From Schizochytrium sp. TIO01 (taxonomy: Eukaryota; Protista; Bigyra: Labyrinthulomycetes), in contig SMSO01000033.1 in NCBI GenBank assembly GCA_004764695.1, forward strand, positions 2,356,001-2,420,000: DNA of 64,000 nt, given 5' to 3'. The notes under the pieces were generated by a model. The model did not search any database and was not told where the DNA came from. It saw only the letters and a program-made list of their open reading frames with translations. Positions 11,326 through 28,817 of the stretch are shown here, in pieces; within the stretch, counting starts at the first letter, position 1; each line of letters begins with the position of its first letter. The position numbers were made by a program, and so were the translations under genes.

Positions 11326-13467
11326 TTATTTCCCCTTCGGAATCTCGATTGAAATTGAGCCTTGACGAATCGCTTTATGAAAAAGGACGCGATTCAGTTC
11401 TTGCTTCATATGCGCATCTGAAGGAAGAGGTTTGGACCATAGGAGATCAATAGCTGTTTCATCATCGATGACGCTTCCAGTAATCAAAACCAGCACACAG
11501 TTCGGGCAGGTTTCCCGTATACGATGTGTAAAGGTAGAATCAGAGAGATCTAGCAGAATAATATGAAATGATGTTTCTTGTGCCTTGAGAAGTGCATCCT
11601 GTTCGGTGCTTGCAGTTTGCACAGACATGTTTGTTCCGAGACGATTGATCGTACGTACAACCATACTTGTAGTTGTGGAGTTATTGGATACAACCAAAAC
11701 ATCCAGTTTTGTTGGGAGGGGAAGAACAGAGTTCAGCAATGCAGCGACGTCGTTAGGTTTTGCTGGGAGTGGTTTAAGTACAAAACGGTCAGCACCAGCA
11801 AGAAGATGCTCCTTGGACATGTCGTTTGCCGAGCAACCAATTATAGCACCAGCATACCCCTGCTCACGAAGCTTACGAATAGTCTCCTCTCCGGTCATTG
11901 GCACACGAAGAGGATCTGGCATATAATGGTCCATAATGATAAGATCGTAATCGGTCTGAGCGGCTTTCGTTAAAGCTTCCTCTCCACTGCTTGCTTGATC
12001 AAATTCCCATCCACGTGCTACGCGCTTGAGCATACGTGAGACAATCATACGAACCATTTTGTCATCATCAACGTGGAGAACTTTTGCTCGCGCTCGGAAG
12101 GGCTTCAGGTTTGGGTTTTGTGCTGATGCTGCAGCAGGATCTGGTACAGTTTCTGGAAGAGGGAGAGAGATTTGAAAGCGCGCTCCCGGACATCCCTCTA
12201 CGCCAGACTGAAACGTTGGATCCAAATGGATGGAGCCATCCATCTTTTCGGCAAGAAGCTTGGCTAACGCAAGTCCAACTCCAGTTCCTTGTCTCATAGT
12301 ATCCAAGGTTTCTTGGTATTTTTGAAAGAGATGGTCACATTCATCAGGGGCAATGCCAGGTCCCGAATCCTCCACAATAACATGGATCCACTTTGGATGG
12401 TCTTTGTCCCGTATAACGCGGAGACGCAAGAATCCCTTTGAAACGAATCGAAGGGCATTCTGGGCAACGTTATTGACCAGCTGTAACAAGCGAGCCCGGT
12501 CAGCTTGAACCCAAAAGTCAACAGGACAATCCAATTCTATGCTCACCCCATTATTTACATTTCGTATGAGTCCTTCTTTAACTGGCTCAAGAATATCTTG
12601 GCGCATACAGGTAGGGCCAGTGCGGAGCTCGAGTAGTCCCACAGAGAAACGATTTAAATCAAGGAGGTTGCGAAGCATCTCATCAATGAACCCAAGGCTT
12701 ACATTCATAGTTTGCAAATCATCGAGAACTCCCGTGAGCGTGTTAGGAAATAAAGGGTTTTGCGGTTTGATGCCACTGCCACTGTTTTTGTCTGGAGCGT
12801 TGCTTCGATTGATTTCTTTGTTAACGGCTGCTTGAACAAAAGATATCGCGGAGCAACATACTGAGAGGGGATTGCGAATTTCGTGAGCAATGAATTCATT
12901 CAAAGCTCTCTCAGCACCCATAGCTGCAAGAAGTGCTGTGTATCGTTCTGTAATGGCAGCGTCAGCCGTCATCGTTGCTCTTTTTGCCCGGGACTGCATC
13001 ACGGAAAGATAAAATAAAGCTATAAGAACAAAGCAAACCGCAAAAAGCGCCCCTGCGGCGATACCTGCGCCGAACCCAACGCCCACACCACCTCCAATAC
13101 CAGCAACTACAAATGCCACAGCCACCATGATGCGTTCTTGTGTAAGCCAAAACCATCGGCTGCGTTTCAGGGTTGCTGTGGATGTGGTTTCTGCATCCTT
13201 TTGACGTTCATTTGCGATAAAAATCGGTACATCATCATTGCCTAGGCCTTGGCTAGACCCAGAATAGTATCCCTTGCTCGAGCCACCATTTACGCTTGGC
13301 CTTGGTGTAGCAGCAACACTACTTAGATCGAGTCCATCAAAATTTGTTGCCAAAAATATACCTTTCCCGCTGTTGCTACCACTGGTGCTCCCTGCTGGGT
13401 TTGGAGATGTGCACGCCCTTGGCTCAGATACCAAATCTTTGGCAGAAGACATGGTCGGGGATGCCAT
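11326..13467 (-). CDS. Membrane-anchored hybrid sensor histidine kinase (TM hairpin-HisKA-HATPase-REC-degenerate REC)
   Basis: H-box FIAHEIRNPL, N-box QLVNNVAQNALRF, G1 EDSGPGI, G2 GTGVGLAL. Receiver VLHVDDD...IIMDHYMP...LKP. Second receiver-like domain (VLVVSNN...ILLDLSD...SKP). Hydrophobic Gly/Ala stretch at aa ~113-156. Confidence 0.93.
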   Translation of the reverse strand: MASPTMSSAKDLVSEPRACTSPNPAGSTSGSNSGKGIFLATNFDGLDLSSVAATPRPSVNGGSSKGYYSGSSQGLGNDDVPIFIANERQKDAETTSTATLKRSRWFWLTQERIMVAVAFVVAGIGGGVGVGFGAGIAAGALFAVCFVLIALFYLSVMQSRAKRATMTADAAITERYTALLAAMGAERALNEFIAHEIRNPLSVCCSAISFVQAAVNKEINRSNAPDKNSGSGIKPQNPLFPNTLTGVLDDLQTMNVSLGFIDEMLRNLLDLNRFSVGLLELRTGPTCMRQDILEPVKEGLIRNVNNGVSIELDCPVDFWVQADRARLLQLVNNVAQNALRFVSKGFLRLRVIRDKDHPKWIHVIVEDSGPGIAPDECDHLFQKYQETLDTMRQGTGVGLALAKLLAEKMDGSIHLDPTFQSGVEGCPGARFQISLPLPETVPDPAAASAQNPNLKPFRARAKVLHVDDDKMVRMIVSRMLKRVARGWEFDQASSGEEALTKAAQTDYDLIIMDHYMPDPLRVPMTGEETIRKLREQGYAGAIIGCSANDMSKEHLLAGADRFVLKPLPAKPNDVAALLNSVLPLPTKLDVLVVSNNSTTTSMVVRTINRLGTNMSVQTASTEQDALLKAQETSFHIILLDLSDSTFTHRIRETCPNCVLVLITGSVIDDETAIDLLWSKPLPSDAHMKQELNRVLFHKAIRQGSISIEIPKGK

Positions 13468-16439: not shown

Positions 16440-17636
16440 TTACTTCTTCTTGGCAACAGCGTTGGCCTTGTTTGAGACCTTGACAAAACGGTAGTGAGCA
16501 ACAAACCACTCATTGCCAGCTCCATTGCCGTTATCGTACTTGAAGAGCTCAGAGCAGGCCATACAAAAGAGACGCCAGGCTTGATATTGTTCAGATGCCT
16601 TGTCGCCATAGCCTTCTTCGAAGAACTTGATCAAGTCTTTGCGGTTCTTGTCGAGGTTAACAAGCCAGTCCTCGAGGGTGCGAGAGTAGTGAACGCCGTT
16701 AATTGCCCAGCGGTTCTCAACACGAAGGTGGTCATTGATCATCAGAAAGAGGTCATACGAAGGCATGGTGCCACCGGAGAAGAAGTTCTCGCTCATCCAG
16801 CCATCCTGGAAGTGGTATGGCATATCCTTGTGGCAGAATACGTGGACCATGACTTTGCCCTCGTCCTTAAGCCAGAGCGAGATATTCTTAAAGAGCACCC
16901 AATAGTTTTTCACGTGCTCAAACATTTCAATGCTAAGAACACGGTCGAAGCTAGCCTCGGGGAGTTCCAGATCGTTGACATCGCAAGTCTTGATATCAAC
17001 GTTCTTGTAGCCGCGTTCCTTGGCACGCGCCATGATGAACTCGCGCTGAGAGTTGGAGTGCGAGACTCCGAGCACATTGAGCTTAGGGTAGTGCTTGCCA
17101 ATGTACAAACTAAGAGATCCCCAGCCACAGCCAAGGTCGAGGACCTTGGAGCCCGCAGGAAGCTTGTCAAGTTCAGCACGGTCGCAGAAGAGCTTCAAGG
17201 CATGGTCCTCAGACTCAGCGAGTGTGGTGTTCGCATCCGGGTATAGACAGCATGAGTACTTCATCTGCGGTCCCATCTTCTTAATGAAGAACTCTGCCGG
17301 GACCTCGTAGTGCTGCTCCGCAGACGCATCAGACTGCTCTGCGATTCCACGTGTCTTGAGGTCCTCCACGAAGGCGTGGATGTACTCAGCCTGCTTCTCG
17401 ACATCGCCGCCAAAAGTAACTGTGTTGATGGTGGACGCAAGGAGCTTGCGGATTCCGAAACGCACGATCTTGTCCGGCATGTAACCCTTTTCAATCGAAG
17501 GCAGGAGAATTGGCTGCAGCACATTATTCACAATTACATCCATCTTGGTCTGATTCTCAGCGCCTTGTTTACGCATCTTGTCTGCCTCACTCACAGGTGA
17601 GCCCGCGTTGTTGTTCTCCTGCTTGGACGCCGCCAT
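16440..17636 (-). CDS. SAM-dependent methyltransferase, CFA-synthase superfamily (coclaurine N-methyltransferase-like subfamily)
   Basis: PDKIVRFGIRKL, EQHYEVPAEFF..MGPQMKYSCC, VLDLGCGWGS, SHSNSQREFI, FDRVLSIEMFEHVKN, VHVFCH, WMSENFFSGGTMPS, HYSRTLEDW, WRLFCMACSELF. Confidence 0.93.
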   Translation of the reverse strand: MAASKQENNNAGSPVSEADKMRKQGAENQTKMDVIVNNVLQPILLPSIEKGYMPDKIVRFGIRKLLASTINTVTFGGDVEKQAEYIHAFVEDLKTRGIAEQSDASAEQHYEVPAEFFIKKMGPQMKYSCCLYPDANTTLAESEDHALKLFCDRAELDKLPAGSKVLDLGCGWGSLSLYIGKHYPKLNVLGVSHSNSQREFIMARAKERGYKNVDIKTCDVNDLELPEASFDRVLSIEMFEHVKNYWVLFKNISLWLKDEGKVMVHVFCHKDMPYHFQDGWMSENFFSGGTMPSYDLFLMINDHLRVENRWAINGVHYSRTLEDWLVNLDKNRKDLIKFFEEGYGDKASEQYQAWRLFCMACSELFKYDNGNGAGNEWFVAHYRFVKVSNKANAVAKKK

Positions 17637-17963
17637 CTTGCCTTGCCAAGAAGTTGATTAGTCTAAAGTTCACGCGTGTCGCGTCGAGTCAAGTTAAGCG
17701 AAGCGAAGCGGAAAGGAGGAGAAGCTTGCGTCTCTCACAACCTGCAGCTCACGTCCTGAGGGTGGCGGAGTTGTTCGCAAGCCTGAGGCGACCTCTGATT
17801 CGACAATTGCCAGCGAAGAAGACACGAATAGTGAATGTATGAATTGCTGAATGAATGACAATCAATCAATGAATTGCTAAAGGACTGAAGATCAGCGCTT
17901 GATTCCCAATAGCAGCTATAGCTACCTAAGGTATTAGGTAGGTACCCCTCCCTACCCAATGAA

Positions 17964-17965
<2 letters not shown>

Positions 17966-18005
<40 letters not shown>
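17966..18005. repeat. (TTTC)n microsatellite
   Basis: Direct reading. Confidence 0.95.
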
Positions 18006-18198
18006 GAGCCAGGAACTGCTTACAGACAAAGCATCGACCAAAGAAAGTTGGCTGCTTTTTCCAGCCCAGACGTGAACAAGCCGCGGAGGCCACGATAAGA
18101 TATCGATCGAGGCGCTCAGGTGAACCAGCTTGTTCGCGGCGCAAGGGCATAAACACCCAATCGCGATTCGCAATCGAACGAAGGCATGAAACTGATTT

Positions 18199-18200
<2 letters not shown>

Positions 18201-18232
<32 letters not shown>
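18201..18232. repeat. (TGAT)n microsatellite
   Basis: Direct reading. Confidence 0.95.
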
Positions 18233-18233
<1 letters not shown>

Positions 18234-21200
18234 CATTAATTAATTGCCCTTTCGAAGGATCTTCAGCGGAGAGAGTCAGCGACTCAGTCTGACAGACCTT
18301 CCGAGTCTCCCCTCTCCCTCATCGCCGGCGAGGACTGCACAACCCGAGCTTTCTCGAGCCGCTGCGGGGAGAGCAAGCCGCTGCGGGCGACTAAGGGAGG
18401 GGTGCTGCGGGGAGCTGCTATCCACAGTGGGAGCCGTGCGAATTCTTGCGCTTTCGTCACAGAACCGACGCCATCGCCATAATTTGGGGAATTATTATTA
18501 CACCTCAGGCGATGGATAGATAGATAGATATATCCATCCAGCGACATGACCTAAAGATAGCAAGCAAGAACTCAACTGCCACGTAAATAGCGGCGATCGA
18601 AAGAGAGAAAGAGAGAAAGAAAATGAGCGAAAAAGAAGAGATGACAGTTCGTTCAAACTGACAACATGTTGTTATTATTATGTTTTTTTTTTTTTTTTTT
18701 TTTTTTAAATTGGAAAAAGGAAGCAACGAACGAACGGCACATTCTTCCTTCAGACATTTATTCCATCATGCAAATAATTAATTTTGATAATTCAAAATTT
18801 ATATTAAAAAAAAAAAAAAGAAAAAAAAAAAAGAGCAAACAAAGCAAACCCGAAGAACCTTTCAATCAAAATCGCCAAAAGCCGCCGCTCCCTCTGTGGT
18901 CCTGGGCTGGGCCCTTCGCGCTTCGATGGGCTTCTCACGGGGTGCAGCTCCATCCCGCCTTCTTCTCCCTCTCCTTCGCTGCGCCGGGAGAGGAAGGAGG
19001 CCCGTGGCTGGTTTATTCTTCCCTTTCGTGCCGCTTCCTGAACGATTTGGTTTTGCATATACATACATACATATATATTATATATATATATATATATCAT
19101 ATAATTTGAAATTGAAATTGAATTCAAAAAAAGAAAAAACGAATTCAAATCGTTCGCAAATCGTTCAAATCTTCTCCAAACCCCTCCTCCTCCTCCTCCT
19201 CCTTCACAGTCAGACAGGAAACCAACGACGACAGGACATCCAGCAGAGGCGCCGTTCGCAAAGACGCTCCGGCGGTCGAGTCGAGCAGGGCGTCGGCCGC
19301 CGTGACTTCAGACTCTCCTTTCTCCTCCTGGGTCCCAGTTCTTCTTCTCCCTCGAATCCGCTTCGATCTTCACTCATTCGCTCATTCACCAAATCATTCG
19401 TTCATTGAGCCATTCATTGAGCCATTCATTGATTGCCATTCCGTCGCGCTGCAGTTAATTCTCCAACTGGAGCCTCGAGGATGCCGACGCGGCGACCTCC
19501 TCATCTGATGCTCCTGAGCCTCCGCAGATCGAGCTCGAGGCGCGAGGCCATTGGCTCCGCGGTGGACGTGCTGCAAGTGCTGAGCTCGATGTATGGATGT
19601 ATGTATGGATGTATGTATGGATGTATCTTCTTGGCCAGACGATACCATGACAATTCGGATGGAGCTTTCGCAAAACTCAGCCCGTTCTCGCCGCTGGCGA
19701 CGAGCGGGTTTGCGCTCCTGGGAAGGCGAAGACGAAGACGAGACTGCGGCTGATCGGCCAATCGGCCAATCGGCCAACGATCGATTCCTCGCTGATTGAT
19801 CGATCGATGTGCTGATGGATTGATTTATTGGGGTCACTGCCGATGGCTGTGTGTCTCCTCCACTTCCATTCATTCACCTCTTCAAGGCTGAGCGGACCCT
19901 GAAAGTAAGTAACACGAAAGGAGCGGTTCGGCGCCTCGTCGGCTTGGGAGGAAGAAGAACTCAACGAAACTCAGTCGTCGTACAAAGATCGTACCGCCGA
20001 GAGAGCGCTTTGCGGCGGAAGCGACAGCGACATTGGAACTGCGCGATCATGCCGAGGCCGCATTGGCTCACAGGGAAAGAAAGATGTCATCAGCACTTGC
20101 AGCAGGCAGTGCTGGCGTATCTTTTTTTTTTTTTCTTTTTTTTTCTTTGCTGCTGCTGCTGCTGTAAAACTACGACCAAGGCGTCGAAGGTTATTTTGCC
20201 ATGGGCCTCACAAGGAGACACGTGCGGAATTCCCAGATGGCTTTAATCTGAGTCAGGGGAGTAAGGTTTGTATAGTTGGCGTATCACAGGATGGTAAGAG
20301 AAGCTACCTCGTTATATTATATACATGTGTCTTCTTAGAAAGATGAGGCGAGGTTTATGGGGAAGCCTTGCGATCATTATGGTCAAACCTGCTTCTAAGT
20401 TGCGGAAGAATCAAACCTGCCCATCATATGTTTGAGGTTGTTTCTGTTCGTATCAGGTTTTTTATTGTTGGGTTTGCTCGCGTTATTCAATTTGATACTT
20501 TGGTACACGCGACGCATGCGACGAATCAAATTGACAGCACATGAATATCTGTATCTGCTCTTGACATGATGTCACGCGAATTTGCGAGGTCACATGTGAA
20601 TGCGGCAGGAAGGCATGCTAATCTTACCTCAGTGTTGCCTTGCGCCTTGTTTTCTTTCAAAGTTTTATAAAACTCTTCGCCGTCGAGGTAGCAACGAAGA
20701 GACTTCAAGTCCGATGGAGATTTTGAGATTCCCTCAGCACACTCCTGCCTATTTGCAGAATAAATATGTGCGTGAAATTGAAATTGATCCTCGTCTGTCC
20801 GAACACGGCACTGCTGCCTCACGAATGGACCAGTGCTGAGTCCGTGCTCGCCACACCCTCCAATTTGCTTACATCACCTGCGTCAATGTTGATGATCAGC
20901 GCACATTCACTGACCCATTAATTGGAAGGAAGCCTCTTCCACCATAGTCCTTTTCCAGACTTGAAAACTATCTCTAAGATCAGTATATGCGTGATGCTTT
21001 CCTTTCCGCACTGTCATATCGAGGTTCATACAAGTGAATAGCTTTCGCAAACAACAGAAATATTCGCCAGAGAAGTAAGTCCATATCTGTCTGAGTGATA
21101 CGGATTATGGGCACTGCCCACCAGCAATCATAAATAATCTCAGCGACGAGCGTCCTCACGCTTCTCGGTTCAGGACGGGCTTCTACGCGGTTTCCTACAG

Positions 21201-21371
21201 AGGGACGTTCGCGTTCGAGAGCCTTTTACGACTTCTGCGGAGACCGCCCGCAGTCTATGATCGATTGCGAAGCGCTTCACAATCGTGTTTCACAATCTAG
21301 CCCAATTCACGTGCTACCTATTTAGCTGCTCCAGAACAGCCCGAGGATCTGTTCGCAATTTGCAATTCTCT

Positions 21372-21454
21372 GCTGCAGATTGCAAAGCTGCAAATTGCAA
21401 AAGCTGCAAATTGCAAAAGCTGCAAATTGCAAAGCTGCAAATTGCAAAGCTGCA
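21372..21454. repeat. Tandem 15-16 bp minisatellite GCTGCAAATTGCAAA(A), 5 copies plus a partial copy
   Basis: gctgcagattgcaaa|gctgcaaattgcaaaa|gctgcaaattgcaaaa|gctgcaaattgcaaa|gctgcaaattgcaaa|gctgca. Confidence 0.9.
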
Positions 21455-21942
21455 TGGAGGTGAGTGGACCTATCGTAGGAGCAGGAGCTCCATAAGGCTC
21501 GCGCCGACTTACACGACATGAACGAGGGCAACGCTGAGGATGATGACGCTGTCTACAGTACCCGCTAAGCCCACTTCTACTTGCTGATCTCCTCTCCCTA
21601 CCAAAGCTGAGCTGAGCTGAGCTGAGCTGATCTATTATTTATTTATTTTTATTAAAGTTAATTCGTCTCTTGGTTTGCTCATCAGCGCTACCGCCGACTA
21701 ACAGGTACGTACAAGTATACTTATTCTGCGAGAACGATACGTGCATGATTTATCTATGTTCTAAAACTCGAAGTTATTGCTAAACTCTTGTCATTCCTGA
21801 TGGTAATGAAGCGATTTGTGGAGCAAGTGATTGCTACTTTCACTTCCTTCTTCTTCTAGTTAGTTTGTTTGCTTGTTTATCAGTTAGTTTGCTCAAAGTT
21901 TGGCTGTTTGTTTGTTCAATATTTGTTTGTTTGTTCAATATT

Positions 21943-21996
21943 TGTTTGAATGTTTGAATGTTTGAATGTTTGAATGTTTGAATGTTTGAATGTTTG
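21943..21996. repeat. (TGTTTGAA)n octamer tandem repeat
   Basis: Direct reading, about 6-7 copies. Confidence 0.9.
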
Positions 21997-22378
21997 ATTG
22001 ATTGTGTGCCAAAGAGAGAGAGAGAAGGAGCTGATGAGAAAGGTGGGTTGAGTCCTGCGCAGAGCCTGATCGCCTTCTTCCTCGCCTTGAACCTGAGGAG
22101 CGCACGCGCCCGAAAGCGCAGGAGATCGAGCCGCGGCGACGGAGGGCGTGAACAGGGAAGCCTCGCCCGCCCGCCCACCCGTCTGTCCACGCCTGCTCCG
22201 CGAAGACGGAGACAGGCTCTGCGGATGGTTGGAGCGTAAGGAGAGCGATCGCAATCCTCTCCAATCTCTCTCTCTCTAACGAACGAACGAACGAACGAAC
22301 AAATGAATGAACTCGAAGAAAGAAACGAACTCCTTTTACTCTTCTTTATTTGTCATTTGTCGTCTGTTCTTCACGCAA

Positions 22379-22441
22379 AATGAATGAATGAATGAATGAA
22401 TGAATGAATGAATGAATGAATGAATGAATGAATGAATGAAT
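22379..22441. repeat. (TGAA)n microsatellite, about 15 copies
   Basis: Direct reading. Confidence 0.97.
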
Positions 22442-23691
22442 TATCCCAAAGTGCTTATTGCGCCATAGTAATCGTACGATGGCTTCTTCTTCAAGTTTTC
22501 GCTATTAGTTATCACCTGAAATCCACACCAAACGAGCTCTTAACAATTTTCTTCCTGTCAAAGAGGGATACGTATAAGGACTGGCGCCATCCGTCCTTTG
22601 GCTTTCGCGATGGGATCGTTGCAGAGGAGGCCTCGAAAGGCATCGCAAGGCGCACGTTGTGATGGAGAGGAGCTCTGGAGGGGACGAAAGCGCGAGCGGA
22701 GGAGGCGCTTTGACCTCGACGAGAGCCTTCAACCATGCGGCAGCAGCAGAAGAAGGAGAAGGAGAAGGAGAAGGAGAAGTGAGGGGTGATTACTGTCGGA
22801 TACTCTTTTCTTTGTTTATCTTTTCTTTTTACACTGCATAATAATGAATGTGATTGAATTCTTCGTTTGTTATCCTTCTCAGAGCGCCAGGAGGTGGAAG
22901 ATACAGCCCCGCAGTCGTTGCCAGGAAAGGCAACCCCTCACGGGGGCTACATACCACAGCTGCAGTGGAGGAGGGAGAGGCGCTCAGAAGAATCTTCCAC
23001 AGTGACTGCGGTTAGCTGCAGGAGACGCCTCACAGCAGAATGGGGGAATCACGCGGCGCAGAGGAGACGCAGTGAGGGGGTCCATGCCTCTGTCTGTCTG
23101 TCTATCTCTATTGGGTTTCTTTCTTTTTTCTTGTTTTCTTTCTTGTTTTCTTTCTTGTTTTCTTTCTTTCTTTCTTTCCTCCTTTTGGAGTTTGTGATTG
23201 AAAAAGAAATGAAAGTCAGCAATCGATCAAATTCAACGATTGATTCGAATAGTCACTCTAACATAATCGATCGAGTGCTCGATCTTCAGGGCATCGTCAC
23301 CAAACTGCAATCAAAGAAAAGCTGAGGCGGCTGCTGCGACCGCGAGGAGGATCGCGACTTCTGTGCTCGACTGCAGGAACTGAGGGCGCAGCTGCTTATC
23401 CGCGAGCAGTGGGAAACTAACTGAGTCATCAGCGAGGCCTGCTGTAGCGTGACGAACGAAGCAGCCAACCAACTGACTCCAAGAACTACGCCGAAAACTG
23501 CAGTATCGACCACGACAGTGACATCGACAGCGACAGCAAAGATCTGCGGACGATCTACCAGACCCATATTCTGGCCAGACCTGCAGAGTCCATCGGTCGA
23601 CCGGTCTTTCAAGCTAGTTGAATATTTCACAAATTGATTGATTGCTTGGTGGAATTCCGCAAGAAGGAAAGGCCACCAGAATTCATTCAAA

Positions 23692-26600
23692 ATGCAGGAA
23701 AAGGCGCCCAAAGATGGCGCTCTTCACGTCGCTGTGATCGGCACGGGCATTGCTGGCCTGTCGACCGCTCTCGCATTGGCGCAGCAAGGATGTAAGGTCA
23801 GTGTCTTTGAGAAAGAAGATCGCCTTGGTGGCCACTCCTTCACCTACCCTGGCGAAGGCGACCGCCCCCCCGTGGATCTTGGATTCCAGGTCATGAACAA
23901 TACAACCTACCCGTATCTGACGACCCTGTTTGACTCCCTTGGCGTCATCACAGAACCCTCAGATATGTCGTTTGCCTTCAGCGTGGATGATGGACGTGTC
24001 GAGTGGAGCTCTGACGTTCTCTTCGCCCAGTCTCAAAATGCACGCGACCCAGGCTTTCTGTACATGATTCGCGAAATCTTTCGCTTTGCAGGCTCCACAG
24101 AAGTTCTCGACGAGACCAAGAGCGACGAGTTTGAGAGCATGACTCTTGGCGAGTACCTAGATATGCGTGGCTACAGCCAGCGATTCCGCTCGGACTACCT
24201 CTTGCCCACCACAGCCGCTATTTGGAGCGTCCCAAACCAAAAGATGGAGCAGTACCCGATTAAGCCTCTGGTGGCTTTCATGGCGAATCACCACCTGCTC
24301 TCACCTCTTGGAGAGCGTCCGCGCTGGCGCGTGGTCGCTGATCGCAGCAAAACCTATGTCGATGTGATCGCCAAAGAACTTGAGCAGCTTGGAGCGAGCA
24401 TTCGCCTCAACTCCCCCGTCAAATCTGTTCGCTATTCCACGACGGAGAACGCATCCAAATCAAAGTCCGTCAAGGTTACCTATACGAACGGATCTGCCGA
24501 GCAGAACACTTCCGAGGAGACTTTTGACCACGTTGTACTGGCAACCCACTCTGATCTTTCCACTGCCATGCTCGGCGAGGACAACGCCGAAGCTAAAGAC
24601 CGTGAACAAGTCTCGAAGATTCGATACCAGCCCAACCGCGTAATTTTGCATTCAGACGCTTCGCAAATGCCACGTGAACGCTCTGCTTGGGCTTCATGGA
24701 ACGTTCTCGATAAACGTGCCAATGTAGATGACGATCCATCCGCTCGCGATATTTGTGTCACCTACTGGCTCAATCATTTGCAAAACTTGCCAGAGTCTGC
24801 TCCCCTTCTCTTGTGCACCCTGAATCCCATAGCAGAGCCCGAGGCATCTAGTGTCATCTACGAAACTGTTCTAGACCACCCCATCTTTGATACAGATGCC
24901 ATGCAAGCTCAGCGCGAAATCAACAAGACACAAGCCAAGGACACGCCGGCGACTCGCTCCATCTGGTTTGCTGGAGCTTGGCTTGGATCCGGCTTCCATG
25001 AAGATGGAATTCGATCTGCGTTAGCAGTGTGTAAGTCTCTGACTGGAGACGTGCCTCTGTGGGCCCAGCAAGCTGGTGCTCCGGAACACCCCGGGTTAAA
25101 GATTATTCGTGGCCCTTCCCCGGACAAGACCATTATGCAGCGCTTTGGTCTTCAAATCTTTCAGTCGGTTGCCAAACGTGGTCTGCAGAAGGGTTACATG
25201 CAACTTATGCTCCCAGATGGCAATGATGCCACCTTTGGTCGGTCATCTTACGAGGATGCCAAGGCGCGTGGAGAACCTGCTGTCCGCATGCGCATTCTTG
25301 ACCTCGGCATGATGTTCAAGTGCATCGCCGAATCAGATATCGGTCTTGGTGAGGCCTACATTAACCGCATGTTTGATGTTGACGACCTTCCAGCACTTTT
25401 TGATCTTCTGATCGTCAACAACGAGACACTCCGTGAGACATTGAACCCGCTCGGCCTCTCTGCTAACTCAGGCCTCGCCTCTTTTGTGGGAGCAATCTCT
25501 TATTGCATAGGCAACGTGATTGAAAACATCCGCCACCTTGGTAATGATAACACGGTTACTGGCTCCCGTCGTAACATTGAGTCCCACTACGATGCTGGTA
25601 ATGACATGTACAAGCTATTTTTGGATAAGTCTCTAACGTACTCTTGTGGTCTTCACCGTCGTGAGTACGGTGCTGAGAATGCAAAACCAGGTGAAATCCT
25701 TGATTTGCACGAGGCTCAGCTGGCCAAACTTGATAGTATTATCAAGAAAGCACAGCTCAAGCCTAGCGACCATGTGCTTGAAATTGGTTGTGGCTGGGGA
25801 TCCTTTGCTATTCGTGCAGCTAGTACAGTTGGCTGTAAAGTAACCGGCATCACAATCTCAACGGAGCAGTTGGCCGAAGCCCGGGAGCGTGTTCGTGAAG
25901 CTGGTCTTGAGGACAAGGTCAACCTCATCATCTTTGATTACAGGAAAATGGGTATCCCCAAGCGTAGGGCTGGCAAAGGCGACGCTCTCGAGTATGAGCG
26001 CGACCTTGCCCCAGGCCACTTTGACAAAATTGTTTCAATTGAGATGCTCGAAGCAGTTGGACACGACCACCTCCCGGAGTACTTTGAAACCGTCGACCGT
26101 ATGCTCAAGCCCGGAGGTATTGCTGTAATTCAGGTCATCTCACTCAAGGACGAACGCTATGAAGAGTATCGCCGTACGTCTGATTTCATTCGTCGCTTCA
26201 TCTTCCCTGGAGGTCACCTTCCTTGTCATGCAGCGGTCAAGTGGGCTTCTGACCCTACAAGTCTCGTGATGGACCAGGTGGATGATATTGGTCCAGACTA
26301 TGCTGTGACCCTGCGGATGTGGCGAGAAAACTTCATTAAAAAGCATGATGAGATTCGCGCTCTCGGGTACCCAGAGACCTTTTTCCGCTGCTTCGATATG
26401 TACTTTGCATACTGCGAGGCTGGCTTCCAGCAGAATTATATTCATAACTACCACTTGGTGTTCAAAAAAGATGAAACTCTCAAAAAGCAAGAGCGCGATG
26501 AGAAGGAAAAGACTCAGCTCCAAGCGCTTTACAACCGCACGTTGGTACCTGCAGTCTTTTTTTCAATGAGCCTCATTGGTTGCCTTTCGTTGACTCTCAA

Positions 26601-28817
26601 CCCGACGATACGTCAGGTTGTCAGCATTTGCTGCAGTGCTGGGCTTTTCACCTCCATTTGCGCGTACTTTTTGCCTCAAATGGACCCGGCTATGGACACA
26701 TCTTCGCGTCGCGCGAATCATTACATTCGCTTGGTGTTTGTACGTTTCTTAATCTCAGCCGCAATGTGTGCCATCGTCCTTGGCTTGATCGCCTTTCATG
26801 AAGTTCTTTACACCACACGTGTGGCTCGCGCTGGCCTATGGACTACCTCATCTGGTTTGGGGGGCAGCAATAGCAATGTTGTCGCCAGCGAAGCCGATGA
26901 CTCCACATTCAACTTGTCGACGGATGCTCCGCAATCCATCTACTTTTGTGAATGGGGAAGTGACGAGACTCTTTGCCAGACCCAGGGAGGTACTAGTGCA
27001 TCGAGTATGATCTATGTACATAGCCCTATGCACTTTGTGGTGGGATGTCTTGCATTCGCATCTGTATCCCGCCTCTTGCTGGAACGTAACCTGATGAACA
27101 TGCTCCATGCACTCGCTCTCCTTGTGCTCAATGTGCTTTCTCATTCTTCGGACACCAAAACATCAACTACTGCTCTGGGCCTTGCCATTGTCCATGGTGC
27201 CAGTGAACTTCACGCTGCGATTAGCGCAGCTCGAACCTTGCTTAGTTTGAAGGGCTTTTCCTGGAGTGACAACCTTTACCACCACATGTGGACCATTGAC
27301 ATCTCCAGCCTTCTCATTATTCGTTGGATCCCCGTTCCTGTACTTCTCTCCCCTGTCATTCTTCGTTCGCCGTGGCCAGTTTTCATTTCAATCTGTCTCA
27401 TTGCGATTCGTGAATGCTCTGTTCTCCTTGACACGCTCCTTGCCTTAAAAGAAGACTACGAGAACCGTCTTAATGCCGAGGACCTGCTCAGCCAGGCCCG
27501 CAACCGTGGTGAGATTGTGAACAACATGGTCGGTTCTCACGAATCTCAGCAGACAACTGCTGCACGTACGTAAACAGAACAGAATTTGCGAGCGCTAGAG
27601 AAAAGTCGACATTTTACCTGAAGCATATACAAAGTGTCACTTTGCCTCTAGTAAATCGCTACAAATACATGCACAACTCTAACTAACATTGCTTTATGCG
27701 ATCTTTTTTCTTTTGTGAAATTTCACCGATCCTCGTCCCATGCCCCCCCCCTTCCCCCCGCCATTCTTTGGATCTTCCTTCTCCGTTTTCATCTTTAACT
27801 TCCTCAGATGGATCAGCAATTTATCACGGTACGGTGTATCACCAGCGCAACAAAGTTGAGGGTGCATCAAATGCGCGGCATGTGTTTAAGTACAATGTTT
27901 GGATGTCACTTGTTGATCTAGCAGAGGTCAAGCACGGCAAGGCTTTCCAAAATTCAATGTTTGTTAGCGCGAACAAGCCGAATTTTTTCTGCTGGTACCG
28001 TAAGGATCACTTCATTGGCCCTGCTGGGCCAGAACAGCCCCTCGATGAATGCATTCGTGACCTTGTTCTCGAGCAGACTGGCCGCAAACTGTCCACTGAA
28101 GGTAATGTTTTGCTTTTGACCAACATTCGCTGCTTTGGATTTGCATTTAACCCAGTGTCTGTCTTTTACTGCGTCGATCCCTCCCACACGCGTCTTGAAG
28201 CTGTCGTTCTTGAGGTTTCCAATACTCCATGGCTCCAAAAACGAATGTATGTAATTCCATTTGACCATGCCGATGAAGATGGTAAATGGCGCTCGAAGTG
28301 GCGGAAGGACTTTCATGTCAGTCCATTCTTTGACGTATTTTACAATTATGAGTGGTCCCTAGATATGCCAGGAGATACTATTTCTGTCCGTGCTGTGAGT
28401 ACGCGTCGCGATCCAGATACAGATGGTGCAGAAGAGGCCCCAGCACGTAAGGGTGAGCCATGGAACCAAAAGCTCGGGACTGCTCCTACACAGATACTAA
28501 GTGACGAAGAACGAAATCAACCAGATGGTCCTCGCACATTTATTGCCGGTGTTAATCTCAAACGCTCCTCTGCAGATGAGCAATGGCGCCAACTTCTAAC
28601 CCAGCCTCTTCTGACTATCTCAATCGTCTTGTACATTCATATCCACGCTGTGATCGTAACTTTCCGTAAAGGCTGTGAGCAAAAGCTCACTCCAGTTAAC
28701 GCCCCAGCTGTTGGTCTTGTGGATGCTCTGCGGCACTTATCTTTATTTGCTGTAGCAGGTGTAGCGGGCATCTGGAGCACAATTGTTTCACCTTTTACAG
28801 GCGTAAAGACTAAGTAA
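23692..28817 (+). CDS. Spliced multi-domain lipid-modifying enzyme, join(23692..27565,27808..28817), ~1627 aa: FAD-dependent oxidoreductase (COG2907/UfaD-like) + CFA-synthase-type methyltransferase (UfaM/plant CPS-like) + TLC-like membrane domain + DUF1365 (UfaO-like)
   Basis: FAD domain: VAVIGTGIAGL, FEKEDRLGGH, VDLGFQVMNNTTYP, SDMSF, WASWN, TYWLNHLQ, WFAGAWLGSGFHEDG. Methyltransferase: IGLGEAY, SRRNIESHYDAGNDMY..FLD..LTYSC, VLEIGCGWG, SIEMLEAVG, FIFPGG, YFAYCEAGF. A multi-TM segment follows. DUF1365: IYHGTVYHQR, LLTNIRCFGFAFNPVSVFYC, EVSNTPW, KDFHVSPFF. An in-frame GT-AG intron links the two ORFs. First ATG at 23692. Confidence 0.85.
27566..27807 (+). other. Predicted 242-nt phase-1 spliceosomal intron
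   Basis: Donor C|GTACGT at 27566, just before the exon-1-frame TAA. Branch-like CTAAC at 27683-27687. About 120 nt pyrimidine-rich with no AG until TTCCTCAG| at 27807. The junction codon C+AT=CAT keeps frame (...QQTTAA-H-GSAIYHG...). Confidence 0.8.
27808..28817 (+). CDS. DUF1365 (UfaO-like) domain exon; listed as the separate ORF 27696..28817 in the track
   Basis: Family motifs Y.G.V.H.R, F.Y...M..VDL, R.FGF.FNPVS..YC, EV.NTPW, K.FHVSPF. The first 37 aa of the listed ORF are translated polypyrimidine tract. Confidence 0.88.

Follow-up and report, generated by a model that had tools for sequence, protein, structure and literature searches.

A divergent gene pair in Schizochytrium sp. TIO01 carries the four domain families of the bacterial route to dimethyl-furan fatty acids

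Furan fatty acids are potent radical scavengers that occur in algae, plants and fish, and the pathway that makes them has, to our knowledge, been proven in bacteria only. Here we describe two neighbouring genes of the thraustochytrid Schizochytrium sp. TIO01, found in a window of 64,000 nucleotides (the whole stretch of DNA that was analysed, positions 2,356,001 to 2,420,000 of contig SMSO01000033.1). One encodes a stand-alone, S-adenosylmethionine (SAM)-dependent methyltransferase of 398 amino acids (aa), and the other, divergently oriented, a fusion of a flavin adenine dinucleotide (FAD) oxidoreductase, a cyclopropane fatty acid (CFA) synthase-like methyltransferase, a membrane region and a DUF1365 domain. 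Between them, the two genes contain every domain family of the pathway by which bacteria make dimethyl-furan fatty acids, whose enzymes are UfaM, UfaD, UfaO and FufM (PMC7380195). Judged by its sequence, the 398-aa gene is the thraustochytrid orthologue of the FufM/LIME1 methyltransferase family, and its product probably acts in the lipid pathway of its neighbour, most likely as a ring methylase. A common function of both genes in furan fatty acid synthesis is a proposal that homology and gene context support well.

The methyltransferase reading frame (16440-17636, minus strand) is complete and matches Pfam CMAS (1.9e-42). Among solved structures, its closest relatives by phmmer are the plant coclaurine, pavine and tetrahydroprotoberberine N-methyltransferases, led by coclaurine N-methyltransferase (CNMT; 6gkv, 6.8e-65), with CFA synthases reaching ~1e-27 at best. 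An AlphaFold model of the protein (predicted local distance difference test, pLDDT, 89.6) gives the same ranking, CNMT-type enzymes first and CFA synthases behind: its top Foldseek matches are plant N-methyltransferases with template modelling (TM) scores of 0.88-0.93 (CNMT, 0.92) and 28-34% identity, and the N-terminal helical lid is common to all. The enzyme was also considered as an ordinary cyclopropane synthase. This is ruled out by its scores against NCBIfam CFA models (~150 bits against cut-offs of 400-650; for NF008686, 150.4 bits against 400, so that the equivalog score for a cyclopropane synthase is not reached), by its 22% identity (33 bits) to the CFA domain of the adjoining fusion, and by a tree in which a very long, fully supported branch splits the subfamily from the CFA synthases. 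Its homologues number in the thousands, and many bacterial ones, 45-50% identical, are labelled only as members of the CFA-synthase family.

Matched to the candidate FufM of Rhodopseudomonas palustris (P0245), the window protein scores above any solved plant N-methyltransferase: in phmmer runs at one database size it reaches 279.8 bits to P0245 and 223 bits to CNMT, and the alignment to P0245 shows 42% identity over 345 residues (6e-93). The first-pass annotation had called the stand-alone enzyme CNMT-like and had given it a role like that of FufM; the structural ranking upholds the first assignment, and the identity and tree placement uphold membership of a single subfamily. In the other 129 members, 77 alignment columns are conserved at 95% or more; 72 of them are retained in the window protein and all 77 in FufM, and in the window protein both the GCGWGS SAM motif and the E-x-x-E-H motif are intact. 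An N-terminal extension of 43 residues is common to its thraustochytrid relatives. In Hondaea fermentalgiana, the closest of the named relatives, the homologue (P0002) is likewise 398 aa long and aligns end to end at 82% identity.

FufM, encoded by RPA0924 in R. palustris CGA009, shares 26% identity with UfaM and converts 9M5-FuFA to 9D5-FuFA by methylation, 18:1 not being a substrate (PMC7380195); it is 37.9% identical to Arabidopsis AT4G33110/LIME1 (PMC10940516). FufM, whose UniProt accession is Q6NBA4, was traced stepwise, from the family profile to a Tardiphaga member, then through a family-level and a genus-level search, and finally by cluster look-up to P0245. Exactly one subfamily member is present in each of 19 Rhodopseudomonas genomes (19/19). 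P0245 is a 341-aa protein with an R. palustris label, and its contig measures 5,459,214 bp, the size of the CGA009 chromosome; genes of this type lie at ~1.01-1.04 Mb in two complete Rhodopseudomonas genomes, a position that fits locus tag 0924, and a DUF1295 gene overlaps the start of the candidate in R. palustris. On these grounds we take P0245 to be FufM/RPA0924.

In the window, the methyltransferase gene on the minus strand and the fusion gene on the plus strand are divergent, with start codons 6,055 bp apart. No gene was detected between them, which agrees with the first-pass reading of a head-to-head pair: the spacer has no open reading frame (ORF) longer than 170 aa, its eight longest ORFs have no Pfam match, and no Rfam family or tRNA was found, the search having covered ORFs, Pfam, Rfam and tRNAs on DNA, so that excluding a spliced or non-coding gene would take RNA data. 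The spacer is rich in microsatellites (23 tandem-repeat rows) and is unique in the genome save for simple repeats and one dispersed element of ~150 bp. The copy of this element at 21859-22008 overlaps a TGTTTGAA tandem array; more than 60 copies at 70-80% identity are spread over many contigs, often in neighbouring pairs. At 6 kb, the spacer exceeds every other intergenic gap of the window (~0.07-3 kb), so this is not a compact bidirectional promoter, and 'head-to-head' here denotes orientation only. The genes flanking the pair are unrelated to it, encoding a hybrid histidine kinase, a TPR/TMEM33 protein, a cNMP/RGS protein and a formyltransferase. The first of these, a hybrid histidine kinase/response regulator at 11326-13467 (minus), is encoded downstream of the methyltransferase and shares its strand. 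Kangiella and three other gammaproteobacterial loci likewise have a histidine kinase after the methyltransferase, but the arrangement is limited to these four bacterial loci and the similarity of the proteins is very low; the kinase was rejected as a conserved partner, its position being probably a coincidence.

The same enzyme families recur together across bacteria. Since the best 80 bacterial loci are best matches and not a random sample, 401 evenly drawn Pseudomonadota genomes were searched as well. Profile scores across these genomes are bimodal, with 36 genomes at 289 bits or more and all others at 167 or less, and DUF1365 is present in 35 of the 36 carriers as against 127 of the 365 non-carriers (Fisher p = 3.5e-14, a value that ignores relatedness among the genomes). 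Among the carriers, the methyltransferase lies within ~5 kb of DUF1365 in 23, is unlinked in 10, and has no listed position in 2. The sole carrier lacking a DUF1365 match (G061, of the Tardiphaga/Bradyrhizobium family, with an 8.0-Mb genome) could reflect an assembly gap or a real exception. Among the best 80 loci, 55 have at least 5 kb of sequence on both sides, and at least one partner (FAD, DUF1365 or CFA) is found in 42 of these and all three in 34. That bacterial FAD/DUF1365/cfa operons commonly hold a second methyltransferase, as the first-pass annotation had stated, is thus borne out for exactly this subfamily, both by the loci with all three partners and by the linked carriers.

In the best 80 loci the usual same-strand layout is FAD oxidoreductase, DUF1365, CFA synthase, in some cases DUF2878 and DUF1295, and then the methyltransferase, an order that was resolved gene by gene for Kangiella. 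The linkage is seen in Gamma- and Betaproteobacteria, Planctomycetota, Verrucomicrobiota and a cyanobacterial metagenome-assembled genome. In loci of the Caulobacterales type, the methyltransferase stands head-to-head with the FAD gene across ~130-250 bp, which is the topology found in the window, and the R. palustris pair of DUF1295 and methyltransferase is the same module as in the gammaproteobacterial operons. In many bacteria the DUF1295 frame continues into the methyltransferase frame with no stop codon, giving open frames of 410-700 aa (loci L121, L122, L126, L128, L129, L138 and L143, and L177-L181) in which the C-terminal NYFFE motif of DUF1295 stands just upstream of the methyltransferase; one 90% cluster also mixes DUF1295 and methyltransferase entries. 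These run-on frames point to translational coupling or to real DUF1295-methyltransferase fusions.

Linkage can also be assessed within thraustochytrids. The 64-Mb genome has three real CMAS genes and one DUF1365, and with these numbers the probability that the methyltransferase falls within 10 kb of the fusion gene by chance is ~3e-4, so that the two genes lie closer together than chance would explain. In Hondaea, the methyltransferase (P0002) and the fusion (P0265) are each placed on a contig of 216,769 bp, and in a second relative, a JGI thraustochytrid, the methyltransferase (P0003, 63% identity) and the fusion (P0266, 61%) are each placed on a contig of 301,552 bp. From these matching contig values the two genes appear to lie on one contig in both relatives, a placement expected by chance in ~0.3-0.5% of cases each, which suggests that their linkage is conserved at the level of the contig, as distinct from spacing and orientation. 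In the MMETSP collection, related protists have transcripts of homologues of both genes, and a scan of metagenomes returned bacterial-type loci only and no thraustochytrid contigs. That two unrelated genes have simply come to lie side by side would fit the long spacer and the unrelated signalling and housekeeping genes around them; given the low expected frequency of such proximity in this genome, the recurrence of the pairing across bacterial phyla and the same-contig placements in both relatives, this explanation is already disfavoured and we consider it very improbable.

The fusion gene is predicted to consist of two exons. The intron begins just before the stop codon of the first ORF, and this GT..AG interval joins the two plus-strand ORFs in frame, splitting a codon with one base before it and two after; the exons were searched separately, not as a joined protein. 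A single fusion gene is supported by a Hondaea protein annotated at 1526 aa (P0265) and by an MMETSP transcript of 1586 aa (55% identity), each of which unites the FAD, CMAS and DUF1365 families. The membrane tail, of ~350 aa, has no Pfam match and no similarity to the DUF2878 or DUF1295 proteins of the bacterial operons. FAD+CFA fusions of green algae and others (P0285, P0294-P0296, P0306 and P0315) hold a TLC domain (PF03798), and the tail may be a divergent TLC-like region. Elsewhere among eukaryotes, oomycetes (Pythium, P0339) have FAD, CMAS and DUF1365, and some species carry fusions of FAD oxidoreductase and DUF1365 without CMAS, of ~720-760 aa (P0348; P0350, from Monosiga brevicollis; P0351); there seem to be several independent fusion orders of the same FAD/CMAS/DUF1365 module.

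The third CMAS gene of the genome (G000:C33:3027057-3028457, L002:997-2397, plus strand) encodes a protein of 466 aa (Pfam CMAS 9.9e-64) with hydrophobic N-terminal segments ahead of the methyltransferase domain, an architecture that we presume to resemble that of fungal sphingolipid C9-methyltransferases. If this gene is of that type, the same label on the Hondaea fusion is misplaced. The Hondaea names, 'Pavine N-methyltransferase' for P0002 and 'Sphingolipid C9-methyltransferase' for P0265, look like best-hit transfers: P0002 is a FufM-family protein and P0265 an FAD + CFA + DUF1365 fusion, and the present analysis corrects these likely misannotations.

The ancestry of the methyltransferase was examined with a maximum-likelihood tree of 133 rows, rooted with three CFA domains as outgroup and built without plant CNMT and LIME sequences. 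FufM falls in an alphaproteobacterial clade (support 100) nested within a bacterial group (91), and the partner of the window protein is that of Hondaea (100). Both belong to a thraustochytrid and stramenopile clade of seven rows (100), itself part of a eukaryote group of eleven rows that includes fungi (85). None of the eukaryotes in this tree falls within the bacteria, and a single eukaryotic clade is not rejected by the approximately unbiased (AU) test (p-AU 0.446). The bacterial ancestry raised in the first-pass annotation is not seen in the form of a recent transfer: the protein groups with other eukaryotes. With its root on a very long branch, the tree does not show which way any ancient transfer went. 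A recently acquired fragment of a bacterial operon would account for the gene content and for the head-to-head topology shared with the Caulobacterales loci, and would be at odds with the two eukaryote clades, with the spliceosomal-type intron of the fusion and with a guanine-cytosine (GC) content like that of the surrounding sequence. Such a recent transfer is not supported, and having already been disfavoured it retains scarcely any credibility.

In the pathway that we propose, the UfaM-type CFA-like domain of the fusion would methylate an unsaturated acyl chain, the UfaD-type FAD domain would desaturate the methylated product to a conjugated diene, and closure of the furan ring with O2 would fall to the UfaO-type DUF1365 domain. 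In the last step, the 398-aa enzyme would place a second methyl group on the ring, so that on lipid-bound chains monomethyl-furan fatty acids become dimethyl-furan ones. The substrate, the order of the steps and any co-regulation are what we infer here. The first-pass annotation had gone further in suggesting that the two genes would encode the complete pathway: the presence of all four domain families stands, and the second ring methylation is a deduction from homology and gene context.

Two other accounts of the function of the pair were weighed against this proposal. In the first, the fusion would make cyclopropane or methyl-branched fatty acids instead of furan fatty acids, and the second methyltransferase would modify those or something else. 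FAD-CFA fusions of Malvales plants are known to make such lipids, the NCBIfam models that best match the methyltransferase domain of the fusion are cyclopropane synthases (below their cut-offs), and many algal homologues of the fusion are annotated as cyclopropane fatty acid synthases. However, the fusion also holds DUF1365, the family of the ring-forming enzyme UfaO (PMC7380195), and bacterial operons unite the same four families; we consider this account distinctly unlikely.

The second account accepts the methyltransferase as a true member of the FufM family and holds that its substrate has changed in eukaryotes, to another lipid or, as in plant CNMT, to a small-molecule amine, leaving the adjacency as a relic with no present coupling. 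Several observations that weigh against a role as furan ring methylase bear on it. The solved structures of the subfamily are exclusively plant alkaloid N-methyltransferases, which methylate alkaloid nitrogens, so that widely different substrates are compatible with this fold. Five near-invariant columns of the family are changed in the window protein (A105S, N106A, L121M, A180G and N193H), substitutions that are conservative, and with the 6-kb spacer a shared promoter for the pair is unlikely. DUF1295, the usual bacterial partner, is not clustered here, its four copies lying on other contigs. The identification of P0245 as FufM is itself indirect, and the disregard of relatedness in the Fisher test noted above belongs with these points. 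The literature that we searched reports no furan fatty acid for thraustochytrids, and the plant pathway was still termed 'putative' in a 2026 review, according to which substrates may differ between kingdoms (PMC13247531). Even so, the window protein resembles FufM more than it does any solved plant N-methyltransferase, nearly all bacterial genomes with a member of the family also bear DUF1365, and the linkage seems to have been kept in two relatives whose methyltransferases are 82% and 63% identical, which suggests selection. A changed substrate thus appears unlikely to us, and a role in furan fatty acid synthesis, probably as ring methylase, is the reading that we prefer.

That the CNMT-like enzyme corresponds to FufM and the FAD-CFA fusion to UfaM plus UfaD has already been published for Arabidopsis (PMC10940516). 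What appears to be new is the physical pairing of these genes in a eukaryote, beside a fusion that includes DUF1365, together with a measure of how strongly exactly this subfamily is linked in bacteria and the divergent topology that matches bacterial loci. Four families held in two adjacent genes, echoing the bacterial operon, add independent evidence that the FufM/LIME1-type methyltransferase is part of the furan fatty acid pathway of eukaryotes, and offer thraustochytrids as a compact test system for eukaryotic furan fatty acid synthesis. We advance as a tentative possibility that the pair is a remnant of an ancient neighbourhood of operon type, in which the methyltransferase has been kept beside FAD, CFA and DUF1365 since their entry into eukaryotes, the other three genes having fused to encode one polypeptide. 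If this were true, the locus would be a cluster of two genes that is conserved and selectable, would be more compact than any other furan fatty acid locus known in eukaryotes, and would give direct genomic-context evidence for a role of algal and plant LIME1-type enzymes in furan lipid synthesis. The features of the locus are collected in Table 1.

Table 1. Coordinates of the methyltransferase gene, the spacer and the predicted parts of the fusion gene in the window
Feature	Position	Strand	Details
Methyltransferase gene, FufM/LIME1/CNMT-like subfamily of the CMAS superfamily	16440-17636	minus	Single exon, 398 aa, SAM-dependent
Spacer between divergent start codons	17637-23691	.	6,055 bp, no gene detected
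Fusion gene, FAD-oxidoreductase/CFA-synthase/membrane/DUF1365	23692-28817	plus	Two predicted exons
Exon 1	23692-27565	plus	Within ORF 23638-27573, first ATG 23692
FAD amine-oxidase-type domain, UfaD-like	~23749-25080	plus	Pfam Amino_oxidase 7.6e-22
CMAS domain, UfaM-like	~25564-26451	plus	Pfam CMAS 2.5e-73
Multi-pass membrane tail	~26515-27564	plus	No Pfam match
Predicted intron, GTACGT ... CAG	27566-27807	plus	242 nt, read from sequence
Exon 2, DUF1365 (UfaO-like) domain at ~27819-28673	27808-28817	plus	ORF 27696-28817, Pfam DUF1365 6.9e-51

Among the systems with which the pair can be compared, the plant N-methyltransferases CNMT (6gkv), PavNMT (5kn4) and TNMT (6p3m) have the fold of the window protein (TM 0.90-0.93) and its E-x-x-E-H motif. 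This motif is no sign of N-methylation, since it is conserved across the whole family, FufM included. The plant enzymes differ in acting on alkaloid amines and in being less similar to the window protein than FufM is (223 against 280 bits). In Arabidopsis, the corresponding set consists of LIME1/AtFUFM1 (AT4G33110), AtUFAMD1 (AT3G23510) and AtUFAO1 (AT1G30130) (PMC10940516; PMC13247531). These are the same proposed eukaryotic homologues, the FAD+CFA fusion included, with functions assigned by homology in both organisms; however, the three Arabidopsis genes lie on chromosomes 4, 3 and 1 with DUF1365 separate, whereas here DUF1365 is fused to FAD-CFA and the methyltransferase adjoins it.

FufM itself belongs to the same subfamily as the window protein, and both genomes also hold homologues of UfaD, UfaO and UfaM. 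In R. palustris, FufM is unlinked to ufaMOD and is translationally coupled to a DUF1295 gene, whereas the window gene adjoins the fusion and has no adjacent DUF1295; FufM also lacks the 43-residue N-terminal extension of the window protein, whose activity is a prediction. A parallel in arrangement is found in bacterial operons such as those of Kangiella, Stenotrophomonas and Xanthomonas, in which the same four enzyme families are physically linked, as they are here. The DUF2878 and DUF1295 partners of those operons are not recognisable in the membrane tail of the fusion. In the operons each enzyme has a gene of its own, the genes form one or two transcription units, and 0-2.4 kb separates CFA synthase from methyltransferase, whereas in Schizochytrium sp. 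TIO01 the enzymes are encoded by two genes 6 kb apart, of which one is an intron-bearing fusion of several domains.

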